64,000 bases of DNA from Cyanophora paradoxa CCMP329. Lineage: Eukaryota > Plantae > Glaucophyta. Below the pieces are notes generated by a model. It saw only the letters and a list, made by a program, of their open reading frames with translations. It made no database searches and was not told the DNA's origin. The stretch lies in NCBI GenBank assembly GCA_004431415.1, contig QPMI01000079.1:1-64000 (forward strand), read 5' to 3'. Position numbers and translations under genes: made by a program. The first letter of the stretch is position 1; the number at the start of each line of letters is the position of its first letter. Of the stretch, positions 5,895 to 43,471 are shown one piece after another.

Positions 5895-6303
5895 TGGACA
5901 GGACTTCGGTCTAGTCACATAGCAGTAGCGGCCTTTGTTCTGGCCGCGGAATAAATTCCTAGATTTCACCTAGATCTAGTCTGAAGATTTTTGCAAACGC
6001 AGACATCAACAGCTAGCGCTAGCCTATGAATTCATAGTTTTCGGCAAGTATGCATATGTATGGTATAGAAATGCATCCAGAAATTCATCGATCGATATCT
6101 CTCGCATTTTTCGATTTCCTTACCTAAGGACGAATGGTGTGTGGTGCTTCATGATAAGAGTGATATCGTAGCTATATAGCTATAGCGTTTAGAATGTCTG
6201 ATGCAGTGTGCGATGAGTTTCCTTAATACATCGTGATACTTTGAACTGATCATGCCATGATGATGTACATGCACGAACGCGTACGTGATCGATATCATGA
6301 GGC

Positions 6304-6596
6304 GCACGGGGGAAATTTGTTAAAGCATAGGGGGCATGCATAATGCGTCCGACGGTCATGAACATGAATTCGAATTGTTTCCGATCTTGATCTAGATATC
6401 TAGATAATAGCTATTTATAGAGCCGCTATGCTTACCGTTCAACGGTTAAACAAGGGGAAAATTTTGTTAAACAGGCTAGGGGGTATGCATGATGCGTCAT
6501 GAACATGAATCGGAATTTGAAGTCACTGAGTACTAGTGTTTCCGATACTATGATGCCGATCTAGAAATGGATTATAATTATATATAGAGCCGCTAG
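6304..6596. repeat. Degenerate ~145-bp tandem duplication
   Basis: ggggaaa(a)tttgttaaa...taggggg...atgcgtc...atgaacatgaat...gtttccgat...tatagagccgcta occurs at ~6304-6428 and ~6451-6596. Confidence 0.8.
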
Positions 6597-6836
6597 CGCT
6601 GCAGCTGTGGTCCGACGGTCGCCCAGCGACCGCGGCCGCGGCCCGGCGGCGTCCGACGGTCGGCCCTGTCACAGTGTCTCACCCCGCGCGGCCTATAGCT
6701 AGGCCTGCCGCAGTGCCAGGCTAGCGCTAGGCTGGCCCAGGCCGATGATCGATATCTGTAGGATTCTGTACATGTGCGCGCCTATACTGTAGCTAGATCT
6801 GCCTTGCAGTTAACGTTGGTGGCGACTTGGCGCTGG

Positions 6837-9800
6837 CGTGATGAAACAAACTTGGTCGGATTTCGGAAAATAAAAAAAGTCAAGCTCGAGAGCCGGAGGG
6901 GGTCTCGGAGATTCGAGCTGCCGGGGGTCGGGACACGGCTAGGGTACTGCGGCGCGAATCTGACGGGCGCCACGGACTCGACTCAGGAGAGCGACGAGCG
7001 TGCACCGGAAGCACCGGGCGGGTAGCTAGGCGCGTTGGCTAGCTCCCCGGCACCCGCGCCGCCGACCGACCCGACACCCTGCTATCGGCGCGGTCGCACG
7101 CCCCTCGCGGCGAGCCTGGCCTAGTCTGGCCGCTCGAAGAGTTGTCTATACGTTACAGCCGGTACGTAGCTAGCTACAGCCAGCACCGCGGACGCCCCGC
7201 GCCTTGCGAACGGCCAACCTGCGCGGCTTCTGTGACTGCGGGCGATCCGTTGCTCCCGGCGCGCTGTATCGCTTCCGAAGGTGCTAAATACATGCTGCTG
7301 CACATACATGATGCGGTCCGCTGGCGGCACCTTCTCTAACCGCGGCCGCAGTACTAGTGTGCTCGGGAGAGCGCGGGGCGCTTCGCGGGGGCGAGCGTGG
7401 TGCGGTGCCGTCACACAACCAAGAGCAGCTCTTGCCATCACAGCTCTTGCTCTCGGGCGGGCTCTTGCCCTCGCCGGCGCGGCACACCGCTGTCCTTGGC
7501 GCAGCCAGCCCACGCCGAGCCCGCCCGTGCAGCCCGCCCGCGCTCCCCGCCCGCCCGTCGCGCGCCCCGCCGCAGGAGTCCGCGCCGGGCGGCCCCGAGC
7601 TTCTCGGACGCGAGGGACGACGCCGCGACGCCGCCGACGCCGCCAGCCCACGCCGAGCCCGCCCGTGCAGCCCCGCCCGCGCTCCCCGCTTGTCCGCCGC
7701 GCGCCCCGCCGCAGGAGTCCGCGTCGGGCGGCCCCGAGCGCCTCGGACGCGAGGAGACGACGCCGCGACGCCGCCGACGCCGCCAGCCCACGCCGAGCCC
7801 GCCCGTGCAGCCCCGCCCGCGCTCCCTGCTTGTCCGCCGCGCGCCCCGCCGCAGGAGCCCGCGCCGGACCGCCCCCGAGCGCCTCGGACGCGAGGGGACG
7901 AGGCCGCGACCCCGCCGACGCCCTCCGCCGCCGCCGAGCCCGCCCGTGCAGCCCGCTCGCGCCCCCGCCCGCCCGCCGCGCGCCCCGCCGCAGGGGCCCG
8001 CGCCGGGCCGCCCCGAGCGCCTCGGATGCGAGGGGACGAGGCCGCGACCCCGCCGACGCCCTCCGCCGCCGCCGAGCCCGCCCGTGCAGCCCCGCCCGCG
8101 CCCCCGCCCGCCCGCCGCGCGCCCCGCCGCAGGGGCCCGCGCCGGGCCGCCCCCGAGCGCCTCGGACGCGAGGGGACGAGGCCGCGACCCCGCCGACGCC
8201 CTCCGCCGCCGCCGAGCCCGCCCGTGCAGCCCCGCCCGCGCCCCCCGCCCGCCCGCCGCGCGCCCCGCCGCAGGGGCCCGCGCCGGGCCGCCCCCGAGCG
8301 CCTCGGACGCGAGGGACGAGGCCGCGACCCGCCGACGCCCTCCGCCGCCGCCGAGCCCGCCCGTGCAGCCCGCCCGCGCCCCCCGCCCGCCCGCCGCGCG
8401 CCCCGCCGCAGGGGCCCGCGCCGGGCCGCCCCGAGCGCCTCGGACGCGAGGGACGAGGCCACGACCCCGCCGACGCCCTCCGCCGCCGCCGAGCCCGCCC
8501 GTGCAGCCCCGCCCGCGCCCGCCGCGCGCCCGCCGCGCGCCCCGCCGCAGGGGCCCGCGCCGGGCCGCCCCCGAGCGCCTCGGATGCGAAAGGACGAGGC
8601 CGCGACGCAGCCGACGCCGCAGCTTAGCCACGTAGCTTAGTGGAGCTCCGCTTTCTCGCCTCAGAGGCCCGCGAGCGCTCTGTCAAGCCTATATTCTGTT
8701 CCAAAAACATGTAAATGACTTCTTTTCTGCGCCCTGAGCGCTGCATGCGACTGGGCGGGCTGGGATCACTCAGGAGGCATCTGGGGCCTCAATTTCCAGT
8801 AGTTCTTGAATTCGGACCCATGCTTTAATCGGCGGCCTTCGGTACCACCACCATCGTCTTCAGCACCCTCGAAAACCCCCGGGGACGTGAAATCGCCACT
8901 TCTGAGTGAGTTGATGCTTCAATAAGGCATCATGAGCAGGTCGGAGTAGCATTTTGGAACTTGAAAACTGAAAAGTTCCAGAGAGGGTCCTACGAGCAAA
9001 GTTCAAAACATCGGTCCGGTTCAAAAACACTTCGGATCACCCTGTGTCTTGGTGCAGTGATATAACTACAGATGATAATGATTCTGGCTCAAAGAGCGCC
9101 CGCTAGGGCCAGCCAGTCGCCCAGGAACTCACTGGCTCACTGGAACTCATGAGCAATCTCTGCTGGGGAAGCGCGCGCCAGGGCCGCGCTGCATCCGCGC
9201 ATGCGCTATTCATGCGCTCATCGAATCGCGCTACGGCGGCCCTGCGAGTCCTCGCGGTGCTTAGCCCTCGGAGAGAGATCAAATTGCCCAGGTGCATACA
9301 CGGCAGGAGCAGGCGACGATCGAGGCGGGCGCGCGCCAGAACCACGGTGCATCCACGCAAGCTCTATCAAGGCGAACATCGATTTGCGCTCCCGGCGGCC
9401 CGTCGCGCCCTCGCAGTTCGCAGCGGAATCGATTCGCACAGGTGCCCCCACTGGAGGAGGAGCCGCTGACGGCGGGGGCGCGAGCTGCTGCCCGCACGTG
9501 CGCTCTGCGCGAGCTCTAGATGTGTCTCGTGGCCCTAGACAACTTAACTCGCGTCGCCTCGCCGTCGCAGCCATGCCATCTGGAACCGCATGATGTGCTT
9601 GATTGCACAAGAGAACGTATCTGCCTGGGGCGCGGCGGGGCATGAAGCGGAGGCTTGACGGGACCTACGCAATGCGGGCGAGCGGTGCGCGGTCTCGGAG
9701 GCGACGAAAGACGCCCCGGCGACCCGAGGCCTGCGAGAGACAGATCCATTCAGGGCGGGGCCTGCGAGCGCGAGGGCGCGGGGCTTGCTTATGCACCTAC

Positions 9801-10500
9801 GCGTGATGCTCATCATGGATTTGAGCGATCAAGCGCTGTCTCGGTGCTGCGTTGTCGCTGCGAGGGAGACAGATGATCGGGGAGGACCGCGCGGGCCGGG
9901 CGGGCCTTCGCCACGCACCTCTAGGCAAAGTGCACGTTAGCTAACAGCCGAGCGCTTGGTCGTGGCACGCCTCCGCTCCAGCTGCGGTGTTGTTCCGCTT
10001 CCGATGCTCGGGCGGCCGCGCGGCCGCGCGGCCACAGCGACGCACATCGTCTCCTAAGGCCCCGCAAACGCTCTACGGGCGTCGCGCAGCTATGGGAGAG
10101 CGTCCTCCGTTTCTATGGGAGAACTGCGCCGACGTCCAGCGCACCAGGGAGCCTATCTTCCGGGGTGGTTCTCAACGGAATCCGACGCACCTTGATAGCC
10201 ACTACACCATGGTTAGGCCCGAATCGGCCTAGCTAGTGCGCCGTGGTCCCGCGCACGCTTGGTACCGAGCGTTCTTCGCTCTAGCTCTAGCTCCGCGCGC
10301 TCCTTTGGGCCAGCGATGCTGCTATGGGTCCGAAGGCTGCTCTAGAGCGTGCGGTAGCGCCGCCGGAGCATCGCCGGCTTCGCCGGCCATACGCGCGGGT
10401 TGCGGATGGAGTAACCCGGTGCAGGTTCATCCCCGGCGATTTGCCCCCCCAACTCGACTTTTTTTATTTTCCGAAATCCGACCAAGTTTGTTTCATCACG
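6837..10500. mobile_element. Non-autonomous TIR DNA transposon, 3664 bp, perfect 45-bp TIRs, 3-bp TSD (TGG)
   Basis: 6837-6881 cgtgatgaaacaaacttggtcggatttcggaaaataaaaaaagtc is the exact reverse complement of 10456-10500; TGG at 6834-6836 and 10501-10503; no recognisable transposase ORF inside. Confidence 0.85.
7503..8620. repeat. GC-rich minisatellite, 8 units of ~139 bp, inside the TIR element
   Basis: gccgagcccgcccgtgcagccc recurs at 7514, 7652, 7792, 7933, 8071, 8211, 8350, 8488. Confidence 0.95.
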
Positions 10501-10997
10501 TGGCGCGGCCACTGCGCGCGGCGCCGCGAATGCATATGGCCATGGCGACTCGAATTTGACTGTTCAGCGAACGTAGCAATCCGCTACCCGGGCACAGCAT
10601 GCATGTGGTACTTGGGACGGAAAAAACAATCGTCCTGCAGGGTGGCTCTTTTGCAGCTGCAGGGAGTTCTAGTCGGCTGCCAGTCGCTCTCACAACCGTT
10701 GAACTGCAGTCCGCGGATCGGACATCATCCGCCCCCCTAGCTTGTTCCCGAGCAGCTGCATCGAGCTAGCTATAGCGCTACAACCAGCACAGCACCTCGA
10801 GGGCGCGGCTTGCAATTGTGCGGTTAGCACGCTGAGTCGCGTCGTCGTCGCACAAAGATCTGCTGGTAGCGCGTTTTTCGGTCCCTGATACGACCGCCAG
10901 CTCGCACCGAGCAGCCGAGGGACGGAGCTCGTCAGCCTCCGAGTGTCGTGCCAGCCGCCAGCCGAGTCCGTAAGCGTAGCCACCGCATAGCTCAAGA

Positions 10998-12338
10998 ATG
11001 TCGAGCTCGTCGAAAGTAGTTGGTTCTCCTTTGGTCAAGTGCCAAAACTTGAGGTTCGCACCCATCGATATCGCATCGACCCTCCCGACGTCTGCCGACC
11101 GACGCCTTTCGACTCGTCGACCCGCAGGATAGAGAAGGTGATGCGTCTGAGCCAGTTCAGCGATTTCTACCTCAACGTGCGCATGCGCCGCCCTGCGCCC
11201 GACTCCCGAACCGCGACGGCGCGCGGGGGAAGCGCGGCCCTATGCTGATGCGGGCGGGCGCCGCCGGCGCAGGCCGAGTGCCCGGATTCTAGCGGGGCCA
11301 TGGTCGAAAACCGCCTCTGTGCGCCCGGCGCCCGCATCGATTCGCGCGCGGCCGCCCCCGCCCCCGCCCTCTGCCGCTGACGCGAGCGTGCGTGTGGCGG
11401 CGGCGGGGGGCGAAGACCTCAACCCGGGCCTGGCCAACTTCCACGGCATCATGATCGAGCCGTCCAGCGAGGAGCTGGTGCGCGCCCGCCTCGCACTCTC
11501 GCCCGCGGCCGAGGCGCCCCGGCCGCGCTCGAACCGCGCCGCGCGCGCGCGCAGGTGCACGACGAGTCGTACGGGCGGGACTACGAGGACGCGATCATGT
11601 TCGGCGTGGCGAGCTGCCGCATCGGCGAGGTGTCCACCAACTTCGACTCGGGCCTCCGCTGCCGCAACGCCATCTTCGAGTTCGAGGGCTGCGCCGAGAC
11701 CGCCAGCCAGTCCGGCGGCAAGCTCATCTGGGCCGAGTTCGAGAATCTCAAGGGCTGCGGCGCCAGTGCGCCCCGCGCACTCCGAACCGACTAAACTCAC
11801 CACCCGAAACCTCGCTGCTTTCTGCGTATCCCTGACGGGGGTACGCAGAACTCGCCGATCACGCCATGTTCGGCCTCAACGACAAGGGCAAGCTGGTGCG
11901 GCGCCGTACCCCCCCCTTTCTCCTGGGCCGCTGCGGCTGACGCTGCGCCGCGCGCCCTCTCGGCCGCAGTACTTCCAGTCGTTCGGGAAGCCGCTGGCGG
12001 TCGAGGACAACGGAGAGCCCGCGCTCCTCCACCTCCTCGACCAGGTCCGCTCCCTCACTCGACTTCGAATTTGAAATCTCGAATTCGAACGCGTGCGATT
12101 TGATCCCGGGCCCCGGCCCCGACCTGCAGGCTCCTGCCCTCGTGGACGAGGAGGAGGCGGAGGAGGGGTACGAGCTCGACGATTCCTCGGTCCGCCCGCG
12201 TCCGCCTCGGGCGAGCCCCCGGCCCCGCCCCTGAGATTTTTATTTTCGGCGCAGGAGTTGGACTTGGTTTCGGACGTCGAAGCCGACTGCGCCGCGGCGG
12301 ATGCCGTCGCCGCCGCAGCCGCTGTGGCGGAGGCGTAG
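10998..12338 (+). CDS. CVNH (cyanovirin-N homology)-like protein with acidic C-terminal tail (multi-exon)
   Basis: Spliced: MSSSSKVVGSPLVKCQNLR|IEKVMRLSQFSDFYLN|AECPDSSGAMVENRL|YLNPGLANFHGIMI...STNFDSGLRCRNAIFEF...LIWAEFENLKG...GLNDKGKL|YFQ...EEAEEGYELDD...AEA*. All introns GT-AG and in frame. The C.NLRI...L.AEC.D.SG...L.LN..L.N..G pattern resembles a CVNH repeat. Confidence 0.55.
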
Positions 12339-13560
12339 CGGGCGGGCACCTTCTCAGCCCTCCCGCGCCCCGCCCCTCGTTTCCGCAGCGATCGCGTGAG
12401 GGGTCTGCTCACCTGCGTGCATTTTTCCTCGTTCAGCGTAGTTCCGAGTTTATTCTATTAGTGCCAACCAATATGACCCGCTCATGCTTCTTTCACCGAG
12501 TCAAGCCCGTTATTTTTGTAGCTAAAAGCCATCTATTGCAGCAGCAGCAGGCATGCAGGTAGTCCCTCGAGCTCCCGTCGTCGTTTCCGCATGCGCAGCG
12601 ACCGTGCGACTTGTTTTGATCGCCTGCGTGTAATTTTTCGTTCGTTGTAGTCCTCGATTGTAAGCTTATTCTTGATCATTGGATTCTCCTAAATCTAGAT
12701 CTAGAGTGACCCGGTCTTGCTTTTTTAGACCCGTAGTGCTGCAGCGGCAGCAACAGCAGCCCCTTTCGAAATTCTAGCACGAGGGCCCGGGATTTCATCA
12801 ATTCTGGTGGTGCCCAGTTCTAGTACGCCCTGCGGTACCGGTCCCGCTCTGTGTTTCTCTCGCCGCCTGCATTCTGACAGGCTGTTGCCATCATAGTATT
12901 GGAGTCCGACACTGATCGATATCTAGACTCGGCATAGTCGGCACCCAGACACCGTGGCACCATCATGGCATGGCCAACGCTTATTTTCCAATTCTCGACT
13001 CGGCGAGCTCATATGATGAGTCATGTCTAGACTCTGAGATCTGGATACCGGACCGGGATGAACTTTCGGAAGTTTCCATGGCCAAGCTTAAGCCTGGCGC
13101 ATGCACTCAGTGACTGCCCACTGTGCCCAGGCTAGCGCTGCGGCATATGCATGCGCATATGCATATGCCACGGTGCCACGGTGGCACTGCCGCAGTGCGG
13201 CATGCGCATGCATGCGTACGTGCCGGCCGCGGCACGTTGCACGTGCGTATACGTATATATATGCATATATGCACATATGCACATCGATATCAGGCACGCC
13301 CGCCGGGCGCCGGCGCGGTATACATGTGCTTGCGAGCAGTCGGCGCGCGCCGCGGCCGCGGGCCCCGGCTGCTGGGCGCTGCAGCTGGTGCGGGTCTCCG
13401 CCGGCACCGTACGCGTGGGGACTTCAGAACAAGCAAGCTTCAATTGCAAAATTGCAAGCTCAAGCTCAAGCTCATCCGCGCTAGGGTACAGGAGTTCGGG
13501 CACCCCAGCCGCTGAGCTCAGCGGCTTGCAATTGCAATACCTAGCCGGCGCCTTGCAGCA

Positions 13561-16055
13561 ATGCTCCGACACCTCGCCGCCTCTCGGCCTACGGGGAGGC
13601 TGCTTCTCCAGCTGCAGCGAACCGGGCACACCACGTACGCTCAGCAGCAGCCTCGGCGCGGCATTGTGGTCGGCATTCCACGCGAAGTTAAGAAGGACGA
13701 GTACCGGTGCGGCGGCGTGCCGAGCATGGTAAGATCGACTTGCCCTCTCGGCACGCGGCGCACTCACGCTCCGATCGACGCGGATGTGCAGGTAGATTTG
13801 CTGCATACCAGCGGCCACAAGGCTCGCAGCCCGCCCCTCCGCTCTCCGAACGGGCGTTGATTGACATCTCCCGTGCACACATGTGCAGGTCCTGGTCGAG
13901 AAGGGAGCCGGCGAGGGCTCCGGGATCTCCGACAACGAGTACGCGGCTGCCGGAGCGACGATTGTTAACTCGGCAGACGCTCTCTGGGGGGTGCATGCAC
14001 GTCGCGCGCCCGTCAGCCGAAGTCGCTGCCTCGCGCTGAGGCGCCAGGCGGTGGCGACGGCGCGCAGGAGGCTGACATGATAATCAAGGTGAAGGAACCG
14101 CTGCTGGGAGAGTACCCTCGCATGCGGAAGGGCCAGGTGGTCAGCGCGGCCGCCGCTTCTCTCGCATTTGATCCTCGCGGTCCTGCGCCCAACGCTTGAT
14201 CGCGGGCCCCCCGGCGGCGCAGATCTTTACCTACTTCCACCTGGCCGCGTCCAGGGAGCTGACGGAGGCCTGCAAGAAGAGCGGCTCCGTTTGCGTGCGC
14301 TCCTTCGCCCGCACCGCGCCGGGGTACCCCTGTAACGACGAGCCCCCCCCCCCTTCCCCCCCTCCCCCGGGCACGCAGATCGCGTACGAGACCGTCGAGA
14401 AGAGCGACGGTACCCTGCCTCTGCTGGTGCCGATGTCCGAAGTCGCCGGGCGTGCGCCTGTGCCCTTCCTCGCCGCCCCGCTCCACCCCCCTTCTCAGAT
14501 CCCGAACCCAGGCATGGCGATCCAGGAGGGAGCCAAGTACCTCGAGAGGCCCTTCGAGGGGCGGGGACTGCTCCTGGCGGGGGTACCCGGCGTCCGCCCC
14601 GCCACGGTCGTCATCATCGGTACCCCCCAGCATGCCCCGCTCTCGCTCGCCTCGCGCCTCCTCGACCCGTCCGGGCAGGCGGCGGAGTCGTCGGGCTGAA
14701 CTCGGCCAAGATGGCGGTGCGCCGTACCCCTGCCGCGCCCGCCCCATCTCCCGTCGACCGCGTACCCCGCAGCTGGGCCTGGGGGCGAACGTCTACATCC
14801 TGGACTCGAACCTGCGGCGCCTGCGCTACATCAGCGACGTCCTCCCCGCCGCGACCTCCGTCTACAGGTCCGGCCGCCGCCCCTCGTCTCCTCGCTGGCG
14901 CGCTCGAGCTCACCTGGCGCGGGGCAGCACGCCGCTGACGGTGCGGTCGATGCTGCCCGAGGCCGACCTCCTCATCGGCGCCGTCCTCGTGCGCCTGGCC
15001 TGCGGGCGGGCGCCCGCGACCTCCGCCGGGGGCTCAGGGGGCGCGGCGCGCGCAGGTGCCCGGGGCGGCGGCGCCGAAGCTGATCTCGCGGGCGGACCTC
15101 AAGACGATGAAGCCCCGCGCCGTCTTCTGCGACGTCGCCATCGACCAGGGCCCGCCCCGCCCCCGTCCCACCCCCGCTCCCCGCCGCTCGACCCGCTCCC
15201 CGGCCCGGCCCCCTCGCAACCGTCTCTCCAGGGCTTCCTCCCTAGGGTCCCGCTCCCCGCCCGCGCCGCCGCCTCACGCGCCGGCGCCGTCTGCGCAGGC
15301 GGCATCGCGGAGACGAGCAAGGCGACGACGCACACGAACCCCACGTGCGTGCTCTGCCCCCGAGGCTTAGCTCTGGAGAGGAGCGCGCGCCCCGCCCTCG
15401 GCCCCGCCGCCCTCACCGGCTTGGCTCGGTCCCGGGCACAGGTACATCGTGGAGCAGGTCAACCACTACTGCGTCGGTGCGCAGTGTCTCATCTGTACCC
15501 CCTGGCGCCCCCGCCTCTCTCGCCCCGCCCTTCTCAGCGCCCCCCGGGTTTTCCTTAACTTCCTGCAGCGAACATCCCGGGGGCGGTTCCCGCGACCTCC
15601 ACCTTCGCCCTCACCAACGCGGTGCCAGCCTCGCCCCTCCTTCCTTCCCGCCCGCCCGCCCGCCCGCCCGCCCGCCCGCCCGCCCGCCCGCCGACGGGCC
15701 GGCGCCCGGGCAGACGACGCCGTACGCGGTGGAGCTGGCGGGGAAGGGCTGGCGGCGCGCCTGCAGGGAGAACCCCGAGCTCCTCGCCGGCCTCAACGTC
15801 GTCGTGCGCCGCCCCCTGCCCCCCGCCCGCCGCCCCGCCGTCCGCGGCCGTCTCGGGGGCGTCGGAGGCGGACGGAACGCGCGCCCGGGCGAAGCGAGAG
15901 GCCTCGGATAGGGGCGCCGAGGGCGATGGCGCTGATCGATGCGATGCCGACGGGGCGGGGCGGGGCGGGGCGGGGCGCAGGAGGGCGAGGTGACGTACAA
16001 GGCCGTCGCGGACGCCTTTGGCCTGCCCCACGCCGACCCCCGCCAGCTCCTCTAG
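13561..16055 (+). CDS. ald: Alanine dehydrogenase with putative mitochondrial presequence (16 exons)
   Basis: Motifs [116 protein letters not shown]. Arg-rich, acid-free N-terminus. Confidence 0.95.
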
Positions 16056-26329: not shown

Positions 26330-26604
26330 GGCCCGGCCAGCCGGCTCGAGCGGCGAGTCGAGCCGCTGAGCTCAGCGCTTCGAATTCGCGGCGCCGGCGC
26401 CAACGCCGCCCAACGCGGCTCAGCGCTAGCGCTAGTATTGCTCAGTGCTCAAGCTCAGTGCACGTGCTCATGACCAGCGCTAGCCATGGCGCCGGCCACG
26501 TCCACTTGCAATAGTACGCATACCTCATGAATCCGCGGAAAGAGACCAACGGGCGATCGAGTGGGAAAGGGGCGGAATAGGAGACACGGAAGGGGAGCTA
26601 TCGA

Positions 26605-28304: not shown

Positions 28305-28493
28305 CTCTCCGCGCGCTACAAGCTCTGAAAATACGCCTCGCCGCCTCCGCCGAGCGCTGCTGTCGTTTCCCGACGATTGCGGACCCGGCGGCTCGGCTCC
28401 AGCGGGATCCCTTTCCTCCGCGCCTTCGGAGTCCAGCCGGCTTGGCGCTTCGCGGCGTCATCGCCAAGTCGCCGCCAACGCCGTAGCCTGACG

Positions 28494-30991: not shown

Positions 30992-32418
30992 CCGGGGGGA
31001 CGGAGGGGCGACTCTGCGGAGCGCGCCCGCGCGCGACAGGCGCCCGGGTACGGCTCGGGGCGCACAGTTAGCTGGGCCCGCCCGGCCCGCCCGGCCCGCC
31101 CGGCCAGTCCAGCGTCCCGCCTCGAGCTGCCCTCGTCCCCCCCTCTCACTCTCATGATCAGCTTATCGGGGAAGGGAAAAACACTTCCCTGTCCTACTAG
31201 GCTAATTATTAATTCCCCAGCCTCGCTCGCCGAGTCGCCCCCCCTCCCCTCAGACGCAGCCCTAGATGCTCCCCCGGCCCGGGCCCTCTCCCTTCTCCTC
31301 GCCCTCCAGACGTAGCCCTAGACGCAGCGACGTTTCAGTGGGCATACATTTAGTGACTCTGCGTAACTTGATATACATGTACATGCGCTTGTGATTGCTT
31401 TGAAATTTGGGCTTTTCAAAGTTTATATGGATACGAAAGGGATCCGAACCCACGAAGTACGTATACGTGCCCACGATTTCGAAGGGCGCGTCGAACCGAT
31501 GATCGCCGCGGCGCGGCGCAATTGCAATTGTGCTGTCATGGTCCGACGGTCCGATGATCAGCATAGGCCTGCCAGGCTGTCACTGTTAACCAGTTAACCA
31601 CGATCTACACTTTACGGGTGCCCGCGGCCGCCTACGTATACTGTCCGACGGTCATGATGTCATGATCCGCCCGGGACTCGGGACACGGTCTACTAGCTAA
31701 TTGCGCATGCTGTCATCATGGCATGATCCGATCGCGATGATCAACCTGCCAGGCTGCAGCTGCCGCAGTGCAGCTGTAAATTATATTCACTGTCGCAGTG
31801 CCTGCCGGCGCCAGGCTGTCACTGTGTCACTGTAAATTATGACCAGTTACCCCGGCCCCACATACGATCTGCGCATGCACTTCACATGTAGCGGCTAGGC
31901 TATAGCTAGTGCGTATACTGATCGTTATATGAGACTCTAAGAGCTAGCTGTAGCTATATATAGAGCTGCTGATACCATATGCATACTATGATATGTATGT
32001 ATGCATGTACGCAATCAATGAATTTGTACTTCAAATATCGAAATTCTGCAGAATTCGAACTCAGTCGCTACAGCTGGCCCTAGGCCTAGCGCTATGTACA
32101 CCCGGATGCAATATTTAATCTGCATACGTATTTGCCGTCATGCACGATTTCGAATTCTGACAAAAACCCATCCTGCAGCTGATCTTATAATTATGAGGCG
32201 AGAAATTGAAATGGCGCATGCGGGCGCAGTCGCCGCGCAGATATCTATTACTAAAAAAGACACATGTATACATGTTAACGTAATGCATGGGGCGAACCGG
32301 ATTTGTGGACGGGAAAAATTATAAAATTAGCTATGTACTTGGAAATGGTAAGTTAAGAATACGTATACGTATACGTATATGTTTTGTATATATGCCAGAA
32401 GAATATAATAGAAGCTGC

Positions 32419-33959
32419 TCAGATCTGAAAATCAAAGTCGGCCACGTAGACGTACGCGTCGGCGTGGCCGGACTCGAGGCGGCCGCGGAGGCGGTTGGCG
32501 AGGGCGTGGCGGCGGAGGTGCGTGCGGTCCCAGAGGCGCCGGCGGTCTTCCCCCACCTTTACGTCGGGACGCTCCAGGCTACTCAAAATCGCCCGCGCCG
32601 CCGCCGCCAGCCACGCCGGGTCGACGGCGCATCGCGGCGGGGAGGAGGGACCGGAGGAGGAAGAGTCGACGTCCGAGGGCGAGGGCGAGGGCGACGTCGA
32701 TGGCGAGCGGGAGCGAAGGCGGATGCGGAGGGCGGCGCGGACGCAGCAGCCGACGGGGACCTCGTCGAAAGGGGCGACGGAGAGGGCGCCACTTGCCGCG
32801 TCCTCCCGCGCGATGCACTCGAGGAGGGCGGCGAGGAAGTCGCGGCACCACGCGGCCCGCCCGCCCGGCTCCCGATCCATGGCCGATCCCGGCGCCTCGC
32901 GATCGCCGGCGCCGCACTCGGATCCGGAGGAAGCGCCCCACCAGAGGGCGAGGTTGACGAGGCTCGACTGGACGTGCCGGCGCGTGACCACCGACTGCCC
33001 GTCCACCCCGCGCACCGAGTCGCTCAGCCAGTCCGCCTCGGCCAGCGAAACCGCCTCCGCACGCGTCCACTTCGTCCGCAGCGCGCGAAAGAGGGCCTGC
33101 GCATGCGCGTGCTAAGCTTAAGCGGGCCGTCATCGTGAGTCCGGATTTCTCAAACAAACTAATTGCAAGTGAAATGAATTGAATGTGAAGAAGCTTATGA
33201 TGAATTTATAAGGGGACGCACGAGGTGGAAGGCGGAGTAGGGCTTGAACTCGACGGCGGGGACGCGCGCGGCGGACTCCACCGTCCCGCCCACTATGGCT
33301 GCCCAGAACTGCGCGACAAGGGGGATCCCGGACGTTCGGGCCGGGCCACGTGCGCATGCACACGAATATATATGGGGGGCTGGGCGCGCCTCGTCCAAAA
33401 CCGCCTCGAGCTCCTCCTGCGCGTCGTCCGCATCCTTTATGTGCAGTTGCGCCGACTGCCAGCGTTCAACAACATTAATATTGATTGGGCGTCGGGCCGA
33501 ACGCGCCGGCCGGGGTTGTCGGCCGCGCGTGGGCGGGCCCAGACGGACCTCGAGCTCTAGCCCGCCAGTGGGGGCTCTGGGGACCGCGGCCGGCCGCGGA
33601 AAGGGCGCGGATCCGGAGGCAGCGCTCGCGGTGGACGTTTGCCCCGGCACTGCTTCATGGCGAGGCGAGCGCGGTTGGAGCTGATCGTGGCCATTGAGTG
33701 CCGCCGCCGGCCGCGGCTTGAAGGGACCATCGCTAGCTATAGCGCTGCAGATGGCTGCGACCGCGGGGGCCGGCGCCAACGCGGGCTCCGGCCGGCTCCG
33801 CGGCCGTGCACGTGGCGAATTCGAAGTCGGGGCTGCGCATTTACTGGCATGCGTAGCTGGCCATGGCGGCGAGTCCGAAGTGCTCGCGATGGCCGCTGGA
33901 ACACCCGTCGTGCGCGGCGGCGCGGGAGACAATCGCGGCATCGACGGGGACGCTCCCAT
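32419..33959 (-). CDS. Hypothetical protein (low-complexity N-terminus, helical domain)
   Basis: Long GC-rich ORFs 33195-33977 and 32419-33015 linked by plausible short introns; segment YSAFHL..LFRAL...AEADWLSDS...QSSLVNLALWW...DFLAALLECIA looks like a folded domain. Confidence 0.5.
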
Positions 33960-34375
33960 CGATTGCGCGCGCGCCACGCACTTTAATGCAGCGCGTGCAC
34001 CCGCGGCCGCGCGCCGGGCGCTCGAGCTCGCGGGATATCGATCTACTGCGCTAGATTCGATGCCACTGCAGCTGCCATGATGATCCGATCCGATGATCCA
34101 CTCAGTGTGTGACTGCAGCTGGGCCAGATCTAGATCGATATCTGTGATCGGGACGTCGACCTAGGCCCGCAGTGCCGCAGTGCATGCGCACTCGCGGCAG
34201 TGCGCACTGATGCGCATGCATCATGCATATGGCATGATCTGAGTAGCAGTGTCTCAGTGACTCCAGTGAGTACTACCGGTACCGTAGAACACATAAACAC
34301 CGCGCCCACTTAATTACCGCGGTACCAAATTACCGCGCCGAGAATTTGTTAAAAGAATTTGTTACCGCGCCTGTT

Positions 34376-34508
34376 TAGAGGGGTATCCCCCCTAATGTCC
34401 ACGGACATGTCCACCCGGACCCACGGACATTGACACGACATGTCCGCGGACATGGAGTCATGGACATGTCAATGCATATGTCCGCGGACATCGGACACGG
34501 CAACCCTA
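34376..34508. mobile_element. hAT-like MITE remnant with TGTCC/GGACA subterminal repeats
   Basis: Ends in ggcaacccta (reverse complement of a TAGGGTTGCC hAT-type end); many ggaca/tgtcc motifs in both orientations. Confidence 0.4.
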
Positions 34509-35310
34509 AGTACAGCCCATGGCACCCATGCCATGATGATGCTATGATGCACATGTACTGTACATGGCACAGATGCTATGGAGCCTATGATCGATGCACA
34601 TGCATATGCTACTAGTAGCCTACTACAGCTGTACTACGGTAGCCTGTACTATGTATACGTAGTACAGGCTGTACAACAGTGCCACGGTGACAGCACTGAC
34701 ACTGCACTGTACTACGTGACTGTAGTAGTGACTGTCACAGTGTACATCCCCGGGCGCCGGCGGCGGGCCGCCGGCCGGGCGCCGGCGCGGCGGCGCCCGG
34801 GCCGCCCGGCGGCCCGGCCGCGGCGGCGGGCCGGCGGCGGCGCCGGCGCCTGGGAGCTGCGACTCTACTAGGCTAGCGCTAGCCTGCGAGTCGGCGCCGA
34901 CTCGGCGGCGACGTCGACCGTCGGACGTCGACGGTCGACGGGCCAGCCGGCCGGCGCCGGCGCCGCCGGGCCGCCGGCCCGGCGCCGGCGCCGGCGCCGG
35001 CCGGGCCGGCGGGCCGGCCGGCGCCCCCGGGGCCCCGCCCGGGGCCCGCCGGCCCCGCGCGCGCCCGGCCGGCGGCCGCCCGGGCGGCCCCGCCCGCGGC
35101 CGGCGCCGGCGCCTCCGGCGCCGGATCCGGATTCCGGATCCCTTGAAAGACGGCGAAAGGACCAGAACCTGTTCTTAAGTTTTTCGAGTCGCATGAAAAA
35201 TGAAAGAAAAACGAACTTCGGAAAAATGAAAAACTTTTGCAGCCTTAAAAAAAAGCTTCGGCTGAATTCAAGTGACTCAGAAAATTGCATGAAATTGTGC
35301 CATGGGCCCA

Positions 35311-35551
35311 TGACTCCTATAGAACCAGTTTATTTAGTACAGTAAAATAATTAGTAGTTCGCCAAACTGTCAGTTTAGCAGGGGCAAAATCTTTAGTAGG
35401 TCGGTCTTCGCAGGGCTTTTGTGTGGCGGAGAAGAGACTACCCCTACGAAATCACGGCTTTAGCAGGCGAGAAATATTTAGTAGATCGCCCAAAAACTTT
35501 TAGTACTATATATAAATATGCAGCACACTAAATATTTCTAGTTCTACAGTC
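35311..35551. mobile_element. ~240-bp MITE with imperfect TIRs and internal tttag(t/c)ag repeats
   Basis: Left tagaaccagtttatttagt versus reverse complement of right end tagaactagaaatatttagt. Confidence 0.45.
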
Positions 35552-35599
35552 AGTGTTTTGACGCCGCGCGGCGCTAGTGCCGGCGCGGCGGCGCCGCGC

Positions 35600-35752
35600 T
35601 ACCATGTAACATTTAATTATATAAGTAATTATGAATGCGCGCACTTCCGTAATGCGGACCATGCCGCGGTCCATGCGGTACCTATAGCTAACTTAGTAAT
35701 TAATGCGTTATTTTGTGACAAAACGCATTAATTTGGGACTGCATTAATATAT
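35600..35752. mobile_element. Degraded partial copy of the 36288-36533 MITE
   Basis: Shares aatgcgcgcactt...taatgcgg...aattaatgcgtt...caaaacgcattaatttgg with the 36288 copy. Confidence 0.6.
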
Positions 35753-36287
35753 TAAAGTTTGTTACCGCAGTTATTTTTGTTAAAACGCGGTAATTTGGTA
35801 CCGCGGTATTATATTTTGCCCCACCAGGTATATGGCGAACGTACTCATGATGATTCGATCATGATTCAATGATTCGAAATTCATGATCAAGTTCGGCAAT
35901 TGCAAGTTGCAACCTTAACAAACTTGAGTTTGCGAAATTGAGACAGCCGGCGCACCCTCCTGAGAGCTCGAGCCTGCTACGTATATATATACTGCTAATA
36001 GTCTGGAATATTATACCGTATATACCTACCTGGTACCATGTACACGGAAAAAAGTATCGATCCGGCCGCGGGCATCATATGCATATTCCCTTGAATTTGC
36101 TCCACGTATATAACAACTTACTAGAACTTAGTAACGAAAAAGTAACTTTTCGGTAAGCCCAAAAATTACCAGCCGCAGATCGAGCCACCTTAATAATAAG
36201 CTTGTTAAATGAAATCGCAACCGCCGGCCGTTGAACTCCCTGCATGCGGGCCGCATTATGGCCCGCATTATATGGGCCGCATATGTA

Positions 36288-36533
36288 CCGTAATGCACTT
36301 TATTAATGCGCGCACTTTATTAATGCGGCACCAAATTAATGCGTTTTCCGTTGGCAAAACGCATTAATTTGGCACCGCATTAAGATCGAAACGCTAAGAA
36401 AAATGCGCTATGTACCCCCTAACGCAGTCAAAAGGCTTCAAAACGCATTAATTTGAGACCGCATTATTATCTGTACTAGGGATCCGGGTCCAAAAACGCA
36501 TTAATATTTGGCGCATTAATTAAGTGCATTACG
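36288..36533. mobile_element. pogo/Tc1-like MITE (AATGCG motif variant)
   Basis: 23-bp TIR 36289-36311 / 36511-36533 with one mismatch; TA-CCGTA left end; internal aaaacgcattaat repeats. Confidence 0.75.
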
Positions 36534-37322
36534 CCGCATATGCGCATGCATGATGCGGGGCATTGCGGGCCCATCATGCGGCCGGGCAGCGGCCCTGCCT
36601 GCCAGGCTGCCGAATCAGTGCCGAATCACTGCCGATCCCCGGAAAAGCCGCGGCCGGCCGGGCCGGCGCCGGGCGCCGGCGCGGCGGCGCCGCCCGGGGC
36701 CCGGCCGGCGCCGGCTGCGCAGTGCGCACTGCCGCAGTGCGGCACAGTGCGCAGTCACTGAGTGCGAGGCGCTGCGCCGCGCGCGCCGGGCCGGGCGCCG
36801 CCGGGGCGGCCGCGCGCCGGCCGCCGGCGCCGGCTGGGCCGCCTGGGCGCCGGCCCGGCCCCGGCAGTCGACGTCGGCCCTCCGAGGCTCCGAGCCTCCG
36901 ACTCGCCGAGTCGGCCGTCGGGCCGTCCGGCGTCAATATTTATATAATTACTAATTTACTGCTAAGTTAATGTGTCATCACTGTCATCCACCATGATGCA
37001 CGTGCACGTGCAATGGTGCGAGTGAGTGGGACTGACTCACGTCTGAGTCATCTAGAGCTTTTATTCCGTAGTTCCAGGTACCGCTGGGCGGGGTATTAGC
37101 CTAGTGTACGTAGTAGGTACTTCAGCTACTAGCCTAGTAGGCAGCCTTGCGAAAAGGCTCGCAGGAGTCGCAGCTGCAGCCTGCAGCTACGTATACCGTA
37201 TATGCGTATACGTACTGTACTTTAGCTTGCGAAAAGGCTCGCAGGCTATAGCTGGAGTCGCAGCCTACCTGGTACCTATGGCCTGCCCTCAGTAGTACCG
37301 CCCTACCATATTAATACAGCCC

Positions 37323-37562
37323 TACCATATTAATTACTGGCAATTTACTGCGCTCAAAATCTTTAGAACGCAGTAATTTGGTAGCGCAGTACATTACCCG
37401 GCCCCCTTTGCTAACAAATAATATATTTTCGAGGCCGATGGAACGCAGTAATTTGGTAGCGCAGTAATTATAAAGCGCCTATAGGCTATAGCTATATAGC
37501 TACCGGCACAGAAGTTTAAGAACGCAGTAATTTGTGGCGCAGTAAATAAGTATTACACGGTA
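37323..37562. mobile_element. pogo/Tc1-like MITE (ACTGCG motif variant)
   Basis: tacc...atttactgcgc left and gcgcagtaaat...acggta right; gaacgcagtaatttg repeated at ~37366, 37441, 37520. Confidence 0.6.
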
Positions 37563-38390
37563 GGCAACCGTAGGCTCCGAGCCTCCAGCTCCGACTCTCC
37601 GGCGAGCCTCCGACTCTCCGCCGATCGAGTCTCCGACGACTCTCCGTCGACTCTCCGTCGCATCATGATCATCGTCGCGAGCTCCCGACTCCCGAGCTTG
37701 CAATTGAGTGAGTCGGACTGACTCGTGAACCGTTGAACCCGGTGACCGTACGCGTGACTCGATCCCGGGCCGCCCGGCGACCGCGGGCCCCGGGGCCCGG
37801 GCCCCGGCGGGCCGGCGGCGGCCCGGCGGCGGGCCCGGCCGCGGCGTGAGAATAAATTCGAAGCTCGCGAGTCCGCCGAGTCTCGAATCGCGCCGAAGCT
37901 TCGAATTCAGTGCGAAAAAGAACCTAAATATAAATTTTAAGTTGCGTAGTAGGCTATAGCTACTAGTACTAGGCCACTAGACTCACGAGTCAAAAGCAAT
38001 ATAATTGTCATTATAACTAGACTTTGGGTACGAGTTACTAGTAGCTAGGCTTCAAAAAGCCGACGGACCTGTCTCTCCGGGATTCTTGAAGGACAGAAAG
38101 CTTGCTCAGCGGCTGCAGATCTAAGCGTCGCACTTGTCGGACCGTCGGACCGTCTCGGACGTCGCCGGCTGCTCGGGCATCGCCGCCGCACTCATCAGGC
38201 CAAGCCTTCGAGTGCGCACGCGCGCGCTGCCTAGATCTAGACCCGCCGATCGAAGGCTTCTCCTAGCGCGCGCTTTAACTTGCGCACGCGAACGTACACG
38301 TACGTACATGCGCCTCTAGGAGCAAAAAACACCGGTGGCCGCTGTGGATATCGATGCGCGCTTGCGCTGATCCAGATCGCGCAGATCGCA

Positions 38391-40522
38391 ATGAGATCTA
38401 GAGCTCTTCTTTTCCAGGCGATCGTCCTGGCTTTTCTTGTGGCTGGCTCGGCTGCCGCGAGATGTGCGTACGCGCGCGCTAGCGCTGCGCCCCTAGGCCT
38501 CCGACTTCGTTCCTCTCTGATCTGACGTCCTGTCTCGCCCGCAGGCGCTGATCGTGAGTCCGCTCGCGCGTGACCGCAAACGCATTAGTATTCGAAGAGC
38601 AGCCGCTGATCGTTCGCTGTGTCGCAGCCAACATCGCTGTAACCTCATCCAGCTGCTCTCTGGTCAAGTCGGGCGGCACGTCCACCCTGACTTGCACTGC
38701 CAACGTGAAGTGAGCTCCGTCTGGCTCTCTTCAGATCTTGATCATGATCATGATCCATTCAAGTCGCGTGCACTGATGTCCTGTTGCGCCGCGCAGCTTC
38801 GACGGGGCGGACCAGTACGAGTTCGAGGTCGACATCACGCAGGCGACGAAGCCCACGACCATCTCCGGCGCCGTCGACTCCAGGAGCTCCCCGAGTGCCT
38901 TCAGCCTGACCCGCTCCGCCGACCGCGCGACGCTCACCTTCACGACCTCCACGCTCGAACTCGACTGCAAGGTCGTCACTCTGAAGATCAAGGTGCGGAT
39001 CGCTGCCGCCTCTGTTTTTTATTCTTTGATATTGATGCTGTTTTTGTACTAGGGGTCGCGCACGGGGGCGGGCTGTGGTTTCGGCGCTTTTAAGACGTTC
39101 GGCACCTACGGGGCGGTCTGCTCATGTAAGCTAGAGCATGCATATGATTGTCAAATTATATATAATGAATTCTTGACTATGCGAACGTGCAGGCGAGTCT
39201 TCCCCGTGGAAACGTGCGAGCCTGCAATTGCTGTCTTCGCGCCTAATCCAAAGATCTAGCTATAGAGGTTCCTGATCACAACTGCACTGCATGCGCAGTG
39301 CCTCGGTTCTCGAACTTCGGTGTCAACGACGGCGAGCGCTGCACCAAGACTCCCAACTCCGTTACCTGCGTCGCCAAGATCGACACGTCCGTAGGGATTT
39401 ATATATATACGCTCATGACCACCAATCGGTGTCTTCGGGTTCGCTGATCACGAGCACCTCGCACGTGCACAGCTCTTCTGAGTACGTCAACGCCAATGGC
39501 CTCAAGCTGTCCTTCTGGATCACGGGCACGAGCCAAGGGGCGAGCATCATCGAGTACGTCCGGACTCCGTTCGTCCCTCTCGCCGCCGCAACCACCCCGG
39601 TGGAGTTTGTCAACACGCTCACCAACACCGGTGGCTTCACCTACACGCTCGCAATCCTCGAGCTCGAGTCGTCGACCACGGTCACCGCGATCGAGTACAC
39701 GATCAAGGCTCCCACGGACATGTTCTGCGACGCTATGATCAAGAACTTCGTCATGGTTGGTTGATGCGATTCGATTGAAAATAAAGCATGAGATTCGAGC
39801 GCTCACGATATCGATGTCGACGTCGTGTCTCGCAGGGCGAGAAGAAAACGCTTGCCAGCCAGACGGCGACGGAGCTGACCTGCACCAATGACTGGGAGTT
39901 CGTGAACCCCGTCGTCGGCAAGAAAGTCGGCTGCCCGACCGACGGCGACGGCGGCGCCGGGACCGACACCACCCTCCGCCCGACTTCTCCGGCCCCGCGC
40001 ATGCAGAACATCTTCTACAAGCCCGCGGCCAACCCGCCCGTCAAGGACCTGACCGCCTCGGGCTACCCCGCCGTTGTGTCGTGGGACACCGCAGCTAACC
40101 TCGCGGTTTGTTTCGTTTATTCTTATCTGCATGAACCTGATCATGGACTTATGAATTAAATGCGCGCAGTACACTGTCAACATCGACGCTCCCGTGGCCT
40201 CCGTGGCCGGCATTGACGCGTGCCCCTTCACGACCGACTTTGCCTTCGGGACCCCCGTCACCACCTCGGCCGGCTCCCTGGCCCTGAACTACCTCTGCCC
40301 CGGTGTGACCACGACATATTTCGAACTGCATCTCTCAGTTCGGGATCCAGTTCTAGTAGATCTGACCAATATTTAATCGCCCCCACCCTTGCAGGCTACA
40401 AGTACAAGGTCTCCGTGCTCGCCTGCACCACCGCGACCCCCGCCGTCTGCGCCGAGGAGGCCGCCGTCGAGGAGTTCACCCCTGATGGTGCGCTTAAGCT
40501 TGATATTAATGTTCTTATTGAT

Positions 40523-40611
<89 letters not shown>

Positions 40612-42812
40612 GAGCGGCCATGATGAAACGCTCACACGCGACCTCGCGCCTCCGGCAGTGGTGCCGCCGACCGAGGCGACCTTCAACAGCGCCTTCACGT
40701 TCGGCCAGTTCGCGTACTACCCGATCAGCGAGTCCGGCACGCCGGTGACCGGCACCTACAACCGCCCGACCTACGACGGCGGAGCTCTGATCTCCAAGGT
40801 GCACACCACGCTTATTTAATCTAACAAATGAAAGCGCGCGCATAGCTACCTCTAACGCAATCTATCGTTTCCAATCGCGCAGTACGAGGTGGAGATTGTT
40901 CTCCCCGAGGACCTGGGCGACTGCCCCGTGAGGAACGGCGTCGCGGGCCTCGCGGTCGCCAGCGGCGTCGCCAAGGCCACGTGCCTCAACTCGAACCCGG
41001 CGTGCTCGATGAGCCTCTCCACCAAGCTCTGCCCTGGTTCGCCGTACTAGTAGCTATAGACGTTTTATAATTAACGACTGTGCACGTGTATGCGCATGCC
41101 GGCTGCAGCTTGCGTCCCAATATTAACGTTGCGCGGCAGGTTTCTCCTACACTTTCAAGGTCAAGGCCTGCAACGGGGAGAACGAGGCGACCGCGGATCG
41201 CTGCAGCGAGTTCTCCGCCTCCGGCGCTTCTGAGGCGAGCGCTGTGGTTCCGAGTGCGTCCCGACGAGCCAAAGAAATTTAAATTTTGCGCCCGCCTCGG
41301 CCGTGCTGACTGAAGCGGCGTGTGCAGTCGTGCCGCCCGTCTGCGGCATTCCGCCCCCGTACCCCGCCGTGGCCCCGCAGGGCTTCTCGACGGGTCCCTA
41401 CGGCGGTTCGACGGTGCAGGACCTCGACGCCCTTCAGGCCCTCGAGACGCAGCTCAACAACGTGCTGACGACCGACCCCACCATCGACCTGGACTACCTC
41501 AACAACCTCGGCTTCAAGACCGCCGTCGTGTTCTGGCCCAGCGTCTCCTACAGCGGAGGCCAGGCCCCCTACGGTGCGCTCCCGACTTTGTCCTGCACGT
41601 ATACGTGCACGTGTACTTCTTTCCTTTAATTAACCGGCTCGGCGGGCAGAGTACAACCTGACGCTCAACCGCTACATCAAGGGCATCAACGGCTACGACA
41701 ATACCAAGTACCAGACCTTCGAGGCAAGTCTTGAAAAGATACAGATCTAGATGCAGAAATATAATAATAATTGCGCGGTGTTAACGCTCGCCCCCCGCGC
41801 AGTCCGGCCCCTTCCCCACCCAGGGCCGCTTCTACGCGCCGACCCTCGCGAACAACGTCCAGCCCTCGTGCGCTGTCCCATTTTTCTCGCCGATGGACAG
41901 CTTTTTGAACTGCGTCCCAGGCACTGCTACTCGATGTCGGTCGAGCTGTGCAACTCGGCCGGCTGCTGCATGCCCGGCCACTTCAACGGCCTCGACCTCG
42001 ACCTCGGCACCGTCTCCGGCACCTGGTTCCAGCCCTGTGAGCGCCCTACATCTCTGCATTCTGCATTCTCTCGATGCTCACGCTCCCGTTTCTCTTGCAG
42101 CGCAAACCTACAGCCGGAAGGGCTCGGCTGAGCCGCAGGACCGTCTCACCTGCACGAACCTCAAGCCGTGGAGGGGCCCCGACAGCAGCAAGGCCGTCGG
42201 CGGCGTCGGCGTGAAGATGGCGTGGGTCAACGCCGGTGCCGCCGGCGCCCAGGCCGGCGCCGCGTCCGCCGGCGCCTCCGCCGGTTCCTCTGCCTCCGGA
42301 GTCGCGGGCGTGGCCGCCCCCGCTGCCTCGGCCGGCACCTCCAACACCCTTCTCGCTGTCGCCATCGGTTCGCGCCGTCGCCGTCGCCTTCGCAGCTTTT
42401 TCAACGTTGATCGTGACGCATGCGATGTTCGTGCAGCTGTCCCGGTCGGCGTCGCGGGCCTCGCCATCGGCGCCGTCGCGGCCGCCATGATCATCACCCG
42501 CAAGCAAGTCCGCGTCGCCACCATCGCCGCCACCAGCCGCGCCCAGGTCCGAATTCCCGATCGCTTGCGACTCGCAATCGCAATGCGCAATATAATCATG
42601 CTTCGGAATTCCGGGCACTCATGAGCTTTTTGCAGGCGTTGAACGGCGGCATCAACTCGAGCACGCAGCTTATGCCGCCGGTGTCGCTCACGACCATCAA
42701 CATCCGGCGGCGCTCGGTCAATGCCGGGAGCCCTGCCGAGCAGCCCGTCCCGGAGGTCGAGGAGAGCGCGTCGATCAGTCGCCGCAACTCTCTCACGGCG
42801 CACCGCGTCTAA
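38391..42812 (+). CDS. Type I membrane protein: signal peptide, Thr/Cys-rich beta/FN3-like ectodomain, single TM helix, short cytoplasmic tail
   Basis: MRSRALLFQAIVLAFLVAGSAAA signal; FN3-like motifs (YKYKVSVLAC, YNRPTYDGGALISKYEVEI, YYTFKVKACN, YSMSVELCNSAG); TM LLAVAI|AVPVGVAGLAIGAVAAAMII followed by TRK; stop 42810-42812; about 20 short introns. Confidence 0.8.
40526..40600. repeat. (GT)n microsatellite in an intron
   Basis: About 37 perfect GT units. Confidence 0.98.
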
Positions 42813-43471
42813 GCAGCTCGTCGACCCAGCCGCAGCTGCGGCAATTGCAAGCGCGCCGCACATGCATTAAATTGCAAACCATCTTCGGATCCTGCTCCAG
42901 CTGTACAGCATTGCTTCCAACGATCAATGCCTCTGCAATCATCGAATCACGCAGACCACAGATAGGGCAGCCCTGCCAGGCTGCCCCGTACACGTATACG
43001 TTCGCGCGCACATCTAGAGCTAAGCTACCTTTTCATTATACATATTTCTAGATACGTGATCTTTACCTTCTTCTTAAGGCTTAAGTGCAATTGATCATGA
43101 CTTTTCATCCAGCCTATAACATCTGTACTTGTACGATGTTCCCATTCATAAAACACACCGTAATACGTATACCGGTATATAGCTAATAGTATTAGTAACG
43201 TGCATGCGTGCGCGCAACTGCAATCGCAAGCTGCTTTAGTCTAGATCTTATGCGCGTATTTGTTACTTCAAATTCGTCTTCCGGAATTTCTTCTTTGTGT
43301 TCAAGATCAAGATCAACTGCTCCACGCACGTGGACGTTGACGAAGATGCATATGTTCGCGTGCTAGCGCTAGCGCTGCAGCTGCAGCTGCAGATAGATTT
43401 GTGTACGTGCATATATCTTGCGATTGATTAATTCAACTCTTGTGTGCGATGGCAGTGCCCGAGTGTGTCTT

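Follow-up and report, generated by a model that had tools for sequence, protein, structure and literature searches.

What fills the non-coding DNA of the glaucophyte Cyanophora paradoxa CCMP329 with short inverted words is the question raised by a 64,000-nucleotide stretch of its genome (contig QPMI01000079.1 of assembly GCA_004431415.1, positions 1 to 64,000; hereafter the window). The window is eukaryotic DNA of 68% GC with many short introns, and two motifs recur in it. In the first, a 3-base site X is followed by its reverse complement X' and by X again (X-X'-X, or +6); in the second, a C and a G separate the three parts (X-C-X'-G-X, or +8). Both motifs are insertions, of 6 and 8 bases, respectively, as is evident from pairs of related sequences in which one copy is filled and the other empty. 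They are probably (at a probability of roughly 0.68) excision footprints made by way of flank hairpins by two families of cut-and-paste (DDE) transposons with 3-bp target duplications, most likely of the CMCT clade (CACTA/Chapaev/Transib/RAG1).

Abundance and shape of the motifs

Expected numbers were taken from local shuffles that kept either 2-mers or 4-mers. The whole window holds 65 X-C-X'-G-X words compared with 6.9 in the 2-mer-preserving and 9.8 in the 4-mer-preserving shuffles, and 369 X-X'-X words compared with 74 and 97. The original prediction, made from the sequence alone, listed 31 coordinates for X-C-X'-G-X, all of which are exact, and rightly called X-X'-X the commoner form. The motif density that it described is real, although its "nearly 30" sites were an undercount. 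The huge excess over chance also stands, but the expectation of about one site per 64 kb was too low for DNA of 68% GC, where 7-10 are expected. In a hand-picked non-coding set of 10.5 kb, from whose motif counts triplets made only of G and C were excluded, there are 43-44 X-C-X'-G-X words (0.2-0.3 expected) and 145 X-X'-X words (4-5 expected). Forms with one mismatch likewise exceed expectation in this set. Thus, the insertions, here called scars, span many ages.

The shape of the motifs is narrowly defined. Among the 16 possible spacer pairs, C,G is the outlier with 65 cases and exceeds each of the other 15; the runner-up is G,C with 25 (8-10 expected), of which the seven cases not made only of G and C are mostly nested or tandem +8 sites. 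The number of words is maximal at an arm length of 3, falling to 8 (X-X'-X) and 0 (X-C-X'-G-X) at arm 4, with no enrichment at arm 5; at arm 2 there are 115 and 7 words compared with 49 and 2.5 expected. The spacer pair and the arm length are thus those anticipated in the original prediction. Triplet usage is broad, with no single dominant word. The C and the G match both flanking bases in only 9 of 53 +8 sites, so they are not templated by the flanks and hAT-type excision from a 5-bp C-X-G duplication is excluded. The classes X-X, X-C-X, X-CG-X and X-CA-X'-TG-X have little or no excess (X-CG-X, 10 compared with 10 expected).

Iterative removal of scars from the non-coding set recovers 161 +6 and 50 +8 events, which make up 13% of its bases, compared with about 6 events in shuffled sequence. 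Roughly 1 in 8 intergenic bases in the window therefore derives from +6 and +8 insertions, in agreement with the proposal that repeated insertion has written much of the intergenic DNA. About 240 events in the window lie over background, and a rough steady-state estimate gives 0.2-0.8 scars per substitution.

The same set also has a residual excess of 2-bp words of the form Z-Z'-Z (78 compared with 43-52 simulated). These may be a minor third class that comes from an element with a 2-bp duplication.

Filled and empty copies

At least eight scars (at 6347, 6521, 7350, 12589, 26285, 26294, 26379 and 37171) have a filled/empty counterpart, and the paralogues differ by +8 and +6 as had been foreseen. 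The features concerned are as follows.

6347-6357: +8 scar on GTC; a single GTC stands in the local duplicate about 160 bp downstream
6521-6537: one AGT triplet with both a +8 and a +6 scar, nested; the stretch is missing from the upstream duplicate
6837-10500: multi-copy, young, non-autonomous terminal inverted repeat (TIR) element; 48-bp TIR, 47/48 identical, ends CGTG...CACG
7350-7358: +6 scar on AGT inside the TIR element; the 6 bases are missing in 4 contigs with about 80-87% of depth
26281-26639: hotspot of scars in one of the zinc-finger paralogues, at its 5' end; the other, at about 28420-28470, is scar-free

The local duplicate 6305-6436 / 6450-6612 carries a +8 on GTC in one copy and the nested +8 and +6 on AGT in the other; at 6347 the empty partner is without the flanking G. 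When the scars are removed, the match that starts at 6309 and 6454 grows from 73 to 128 bp and its E value falls from 7e-6 to 3e-12. In a pairwise test of the three main pairs, the scar-free score is clearly above the mean of random deletions. The four contigs without the 6 bases at 7350 hold most of the depth, so the filled state is the minority among copies of the TIR element. In the zinc-finger paralogues, +6 scars at 26285, 26294 (two) and 26379 all lie in one copy. Removal of the scars at 35682/35689 and 37171 restores adjacent repeat units.

The zinc-finger genes stand in tandem (24458-28424) and are 73% alike; gene conversion may account for a block at 25183-25330 in which they are nearly identical. 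At 26314-26335, comparison with the paralogue points to a possible X-CG-X (+5) on GCC inside a +6 scar, in a class that is not enriched overall.

Authenticity of the sequence

Logan contigs from three short-read runs (two from 2024 and one from 2012) were compared with the window. Over 5900-6866 the contigs of all three runs have no differing letters and no gaps, and over 10471-11500 two runs are without differences, as is the third over 10471-11359. The motifs are thus truly in the DNA. The chance that they reflect assembly errors or base composition is practically negligible: the assembly does have local indel errors, for instance in the first 4 kb, and triplets made only of G and C yield some chance matches, but contigs from 2012 and 2024 are identical base for base over both checked stretches, the excess persists under 4-mer-preserving shuffles and without such triplets, and paralogues differ by exactly the +6 and +8 insertions. 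The beginning of the window (1-4500) holds a large gene for a tandemly repeated protein with many single-base indels in its first copies, which are probably errors of long-read assembly.

Two classes with different distributions

The scars are unevenly spread over the window. Gene limits for the counts below were drawn by eye.

5896-6836: scar-dense intergenic DNA; 19 +6 and 8 +8, about 29 per kb; three short-read runs agree
10501-11008: scar-rich intergenic DNA; 6 +6 and 1 +8; agrees with short-read contigs
12341-13561: scar-dense intergenic DNA; 21 +6 and 10 +8; near 12385 lies an empty counterpart of the +6 at 12589
21487-21497: +8 scar in an intron, the only such case found
30991-32418: scar-dense intergenic DNA; 20 +6 and 11 +8
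32419-33977, minus strand: gene region that corresponds to the C. paradoxa model tig00000317_g24020, with 17 +6 (some coding) and 0 +8
33978-38390: intergenic and repeat-relic zone; 43 +6 and 23 +8
38391-42812, plus strand: multi-intron gene; 21 +6 (about 16 intronic, three near the start of the coding sequence), 0 +8
42813-43559: scar-rich intergenic DNA; 10 +6 and 1 +8

Intergenic DNA holds 142 +6 (background 18) and 55 +8, whereas gene bodies hold 72 +6 (background 14) and only 3 +8 (Fisher p 3e-6 after background subtraction). In-frame selection accounts for the scarcity of +8 in the coding part. However, the introns of gene 38391-42812 contain about 16 +6 and zero +8 (p about 0.003-0.006), so the reading frame cannot be the filter there. 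Additionally, a single element whose ends each retained 0 or 1 base independently, as had been proposed, would have produced about 156 +7 hybrids, whereas only 13 were counted, 3-4 of which are accounted for by simulated nesting. Independent retention of the C at each end is therefore rejected. Because hybrids are too few and +8 is nearly missing from gene bodies, the +6 and +8 scars are most likely the products of two separate processes.

The TIR element at 6837-10500 holds 0.3 scars per kb compared with 29 per kb in the adjoining DNA, an approximately 100-fold difference. Since this young element is nearly scar-free, scars accumulate with time in place. Scars also cluster. Scars enlarge their own target, which inflates a simple clustering test, so a forward simulation with uniform targets was used: 60 of 229 new scars lie within 2 bases of an earlier scar compared with about 33 expected (p 3e-6), an approximately twofold excess that could come in part from slippage of 6-bp units or from small hotspots.

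The gene at 32419-33977 belongs to an orphan family with matches only in C. paradoxa (three clusters, four proteins) plus one weak repetitive match. Its stop-free frame at 32710-33111 (minus strand) is 99% identical to the EukProt Cyanophora paradoxa protein tig00000317_g24020, the gene has no Pfam domain, and its linker, which contains two +6 scars, exceeds that of one paralogue in length. At 38394-38500, three in-frame +6 scars stand where the coding sequence of a large, secreted-looking protein starts. The zone 34306-37560 contains decayed repeat relics without clear ends, made of short palindromic units in both orientations, including a 23-bp inverted pair at 34315/35786 with copies at 35698, 36334, 36439, 37366 and 37441. 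These units resemble the subterminal repeats of transposons.

Excision through flank hairpins as the probable source of scars

From insertions of fixed shape, in two classes with differing distributions, a spread of ages and clustering, we infer an element, an enzyme and a hairpin intermediate. Insertion of an element would convert X to X[element]X. On the model of RAG and Transib chemistry, the transposase of one family (A) would then nick exactly at the element ends and leave flank hairpins X-X'. That of the second family (B) would nick the non-transferred strand one base inside the 5'-C, giving hairpins X-C-X' on the left and X'-G-X on the right with the C as a one-base loop. In family B the transferred 3'-G end would stay intact and the element would survive repeated cycles; in the reverse arrangement, where the attack falls one base into the transferred strand, the element would lose length in each cycle, which should be unsustainable. 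A host nuclease, as is established for hAT and RAG, would open the hairpins at least 3 bases past the tip. Since the target is duplicated, the resulting tails would be complementary over X'/X and a single product would be favored; annealing, fill-in and ligation would give X-X'-X or X-C-X'-G-X. This geometry, which was put forward in the original prediction, gives precisely +6 or +8. If the tails annealed over X, the site would be restored without a trace. C. paradoxa is probably haploid (PMC6704402), so donor sites would often be without a repair template. In a haploid cell lacking a homologous template, each jump could leave a scar while copy number stays flat, and scars would pile up.

Several observations from other systems are consistent with these steps. 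Flank hairpins, with host enzymes to open them, are known for hAT, Transib, RAG and MULE systems (PMC5499845), and repair of Ac/Ds excision in Arabidopsis and yeast gives palindromic footprints with microhomology in 85-100% of cases (PMC5873905). The earlier statement that flank hairpins are established for both hAT and CACTA transposases holds for hAT (PMC5499845) but is overstated for CACTA, for which they are deduced from Transib/RAG ancestry (PMC12730594). By geometry, a RAG-like nick at the junction fits the +6 class. The fixed C and G of the +8 class fit 5'-C...G-3' termini, of which the +8 scars record only one base and the +6 scars none, and the 3-bp target duplication is read from the arm length of the scars and not from an element. 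The CMCT clade is a natural suspect, since EnSpm elements have CAC..GTG ends, a target-site duplication (TSD) of 3 bp and catalytic motifs common to Transib/RAG1 (PMC12730594).

A number of points weigh against this reading. Neither a transposase nor an empty allele of a known element nor a one-ended intermediate was found in the window data: a Pfam search of 30 reading frames of the window gave no transposase, the DDE type with C(2)C and H(3-4)H motifs that a CMCT source would need included, and a scan for TIRs and TSDs found no CAC..GTG element with a 3-bp TSD in the window. An Rfam scan gave no match. No segregating scar was seen, and all runs appear to be of one strain. The simple products X-X, X-C-X and X-CG-X are hardly enriched. 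In two of the three main pairs the scar-free score merely equals that of the best random deletion, and two other pairs gain nothing from scar removal. To our knowledge, no characterised transposase combines a nick one base inside its element with a hairpin on the flank. Footprints of a plant CACTA element are reported to be 3-5 bp (10.64898/2026.08.24.746626) and those of hAT elements are heterogeneous (PMC5873905), whereas the scars are uniform at +6 and +8. Finally, only one intact TIR element is present here; its TSD is ambiguous, and its CGTG ends are not canonical. Thus, of the proposed transposon origin, the insertion of pieces of fixed shape stands, whereas the origin itself is inferred, as neither an excision nor a transposase was caught.

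The TIR element at 6837-10500, the only convincing one in the TIR/TSD scan of the window, is a candidate source of scars and no more. It starts with C and ends with G, and its CGTG ends differ from the CA..TG of the CMCT clade. Its flanks carry a 3-bp duplication of TGG, although an 8/9-bp duplication with one indel fits equally well; chance 6-bp tandems occur at 1.2% of intergenic positions. The element encodes no recognisable transposase, a search of Joint Genome Institute (JGI) metagenomes with the TIR gave no match, and among the contig joints listed, from runs that appear to be of one strain, none skips 6837-10500. Unique contigs stop 30 bases inside each terminus, parts of the interior are far more repeated, and a second, diverged variant at single-copy depth covers 9744-9985 and 10112-10435.

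Other features of the element are of note. In one contig, whose depth is roughly single-copy, 7108 and 10455 are linked by one intervening base, which points to a short derivative with an internal deletion, similar to a miniature inverted-repeat transposable element, at another place in the genome. At 7500-8620 a 139-bp unit is repeated 8 times in tandem, and next to it, at 8700-9100, the summed contig depth is tens of times that of the flanks. In the run X21, which looks like RNA, contigs connect the minus-strand segments 10191-10292, 9919-9985 and 9627-9729 over GT..AG gaps. The element thus looks like the carrier of a spliced transcript (window 9627-10346, minus strand); the spliced exons examined have stops in all frames or no Pfam match.

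Other possible origins

The scars might instead be abortive insertions of an element that is never a stable resident. A transposase, or a domesticated one, would integrate, the host would fill the 3- or 4-base gap, and the bound enzyme would hairpin the flanks through the unligated nick and leave. The free 3' end after gap filling should lie at the position of the first excision nick in both geometries, and such hit-and-run events would explain why many scars occur with few resident elements in a genome of low repeat content (PMC6704402), as well as the twofold excess of re-hits within 2 bases; RAG is known to favor hairpin-like targets (PMC1618415). We consider this origin unlikely. It has no direct evidence, the re-hits could also come from slippage of 6-bp units or from small hotspots, and 0.2-0.8 scars per substitution should be reachable over long periods by ordinary per-copy excision, given typical mutation rates, so that abortive insertion is not needed. 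A single family that makes both scars with coupled ends, through two conformations or transposase isoforms, is slightly more doubtful. It would be in keeping with the 3-base arm, the broad triplet use and the hotspots common to both classes, and the contrast between introns and intergenic DNA would be left to selection or chromatin-dependent repair. However, it requires all-or-none coupling to give 13 and not about 156 hybrids, and a reason why introns that accept +6 lack +8.

A host process without any transposon, such as replication template switching, fold-back synthesis by a polymerase at breaks or a nuclease with a 3-base stagger, is improbable. Short template switches do make inverted copies flanked by repeats (PMC5453318), and no element is tied to any scar here. 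Yet the fragments copied in template switching are not fixed in length, whereas the arm here is 3, and nothing in template switching would supply a C and a G that are invariant, strand-symmetric and foreign to the flank. X-X' would require a fold-back without a loop, and the approximately 100-fold contrast in density between old intergenic DNA and the adjacent young element also speaks against a host process. The hAT geometry on duplications of 4, 5, 6, 8 and 9 bp was rejected as the main source: for 6, 8 and 9 bp there are 0 matches, and for 3-5 bp there is a small excess that simulated nesting mostly reproduces for 3 and 4 bp.

Relation to known transposition systems

hAT elements have 8-bp TSDs, and RAG and Transib have 5-bp TSDs and heterogeneous joints. 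A hairpin at the junction, as in the P nucleotides of RAG1/Transib coding joints, would give an even-centred X-X' palindrome like that of the +6 scars. The scars differ from RAG and Transib products in that arm 5 is not enriched and in that +8 needs a nick one base inside the element. Like the scars, the footprints of hAT elements (Ac/Ds, Tam3, Hermes) are palindromic insertions at the donor site that come from opening of flank hairpins and microhomology joining (PMC5873905), but the hAT palindrome is centred on the complement of a flanking base and varies in length. Here, the centre is either absent or a fixed C/G foreign to the flank, the unit that is duplicated measures 3 bp, and the products are mainly of two kinds. 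CACTA/En-Spm elements share a 3-bp TSD, 5'-C...G-3' ends and catalytic motifs common to Transib/RAG1 (PMC12730594; PMC3193017). They differ in the size of their footprints in plants, no CACTA terminus pair with a 3-bp TSD lies in the window, and no paper showing the cleavage chemistry of CACTA was found.

In Tc1/mariner elements the non-transferred strand is cut inside the element and terminal bases are left behind (PMC4561436), as would be the case for the C and G of +8. However, their 2-bp TSD is TA-specific, they form no hairpin and leave no inverted target copy, and X-CG-X, the analogue of their footprint, is at background. PIF/Harbinger elements such as mPing have a 3-bp TSD and repair aided by TSD microhomology (PMC4561436). 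In contrast to the scars, which use all kinds of triplets and add an inverted copy, they cut within the TSD, excise precisely and target TTA/TAA. Thus, the scars appear to work like hAT or RAG hairpin repair, yet they are not a hAT footprint, and membership of CACTA is unproven.

Implications for the Cyanophora genome

No report of such a pattern was found in a literature search that left out most subscription papers. The C. paradoxa genome paper has no mention of CACTA or EnSpm, and only small fractions of long terminal repeat (LTR) and long interspersed nuclear (LINE) elements were classified (PMC6704402). What is new is the uniformity of the footprints, the coexistence of two geometries, the predicted chemistry of an inside nick plus a hairpin, and the density. 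Tentatively, Cyanophora may harbor a transposase of undescribed geometry, which combines a mariner-like nick one base inside the element with a RAG-like flank hairpin, and a second family, together acting as a self-reinforcing mutator that writes sequence. If so, palindromic scars would attract further hits, about one scar would arise per one to five intergenic substitutions, and in-frame insertions of two codons would be added to proteins.

Transposon footprints are usually too varied to be recognised once the element is lost. With uniform footprints, by contrast, a single genome sequence would suffice to count past jumps, date them and map their positions. If the scars are excision footprints, they are one of the main kinds of mutation in intergenic DNA here, and, by extrapolation, the genome would hold perhaps several hundred thousand of them, provided that the window is representative. 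A long-standing proposal, namely that much sequence diversity stems from footprints, thereby becomes directly testable. The scars would also serve as a sequence read-out of cleavage geometry for transposases for which we found no description of the chemistry, and they predict a new combination of nick and hairpin. In Cyanophora promoters, scars should be subtracted before short palindromes are read as regulatory motifs. More broadly, transposons would have shaped the non-coding DNA even of a genome in which few of them have been classified.

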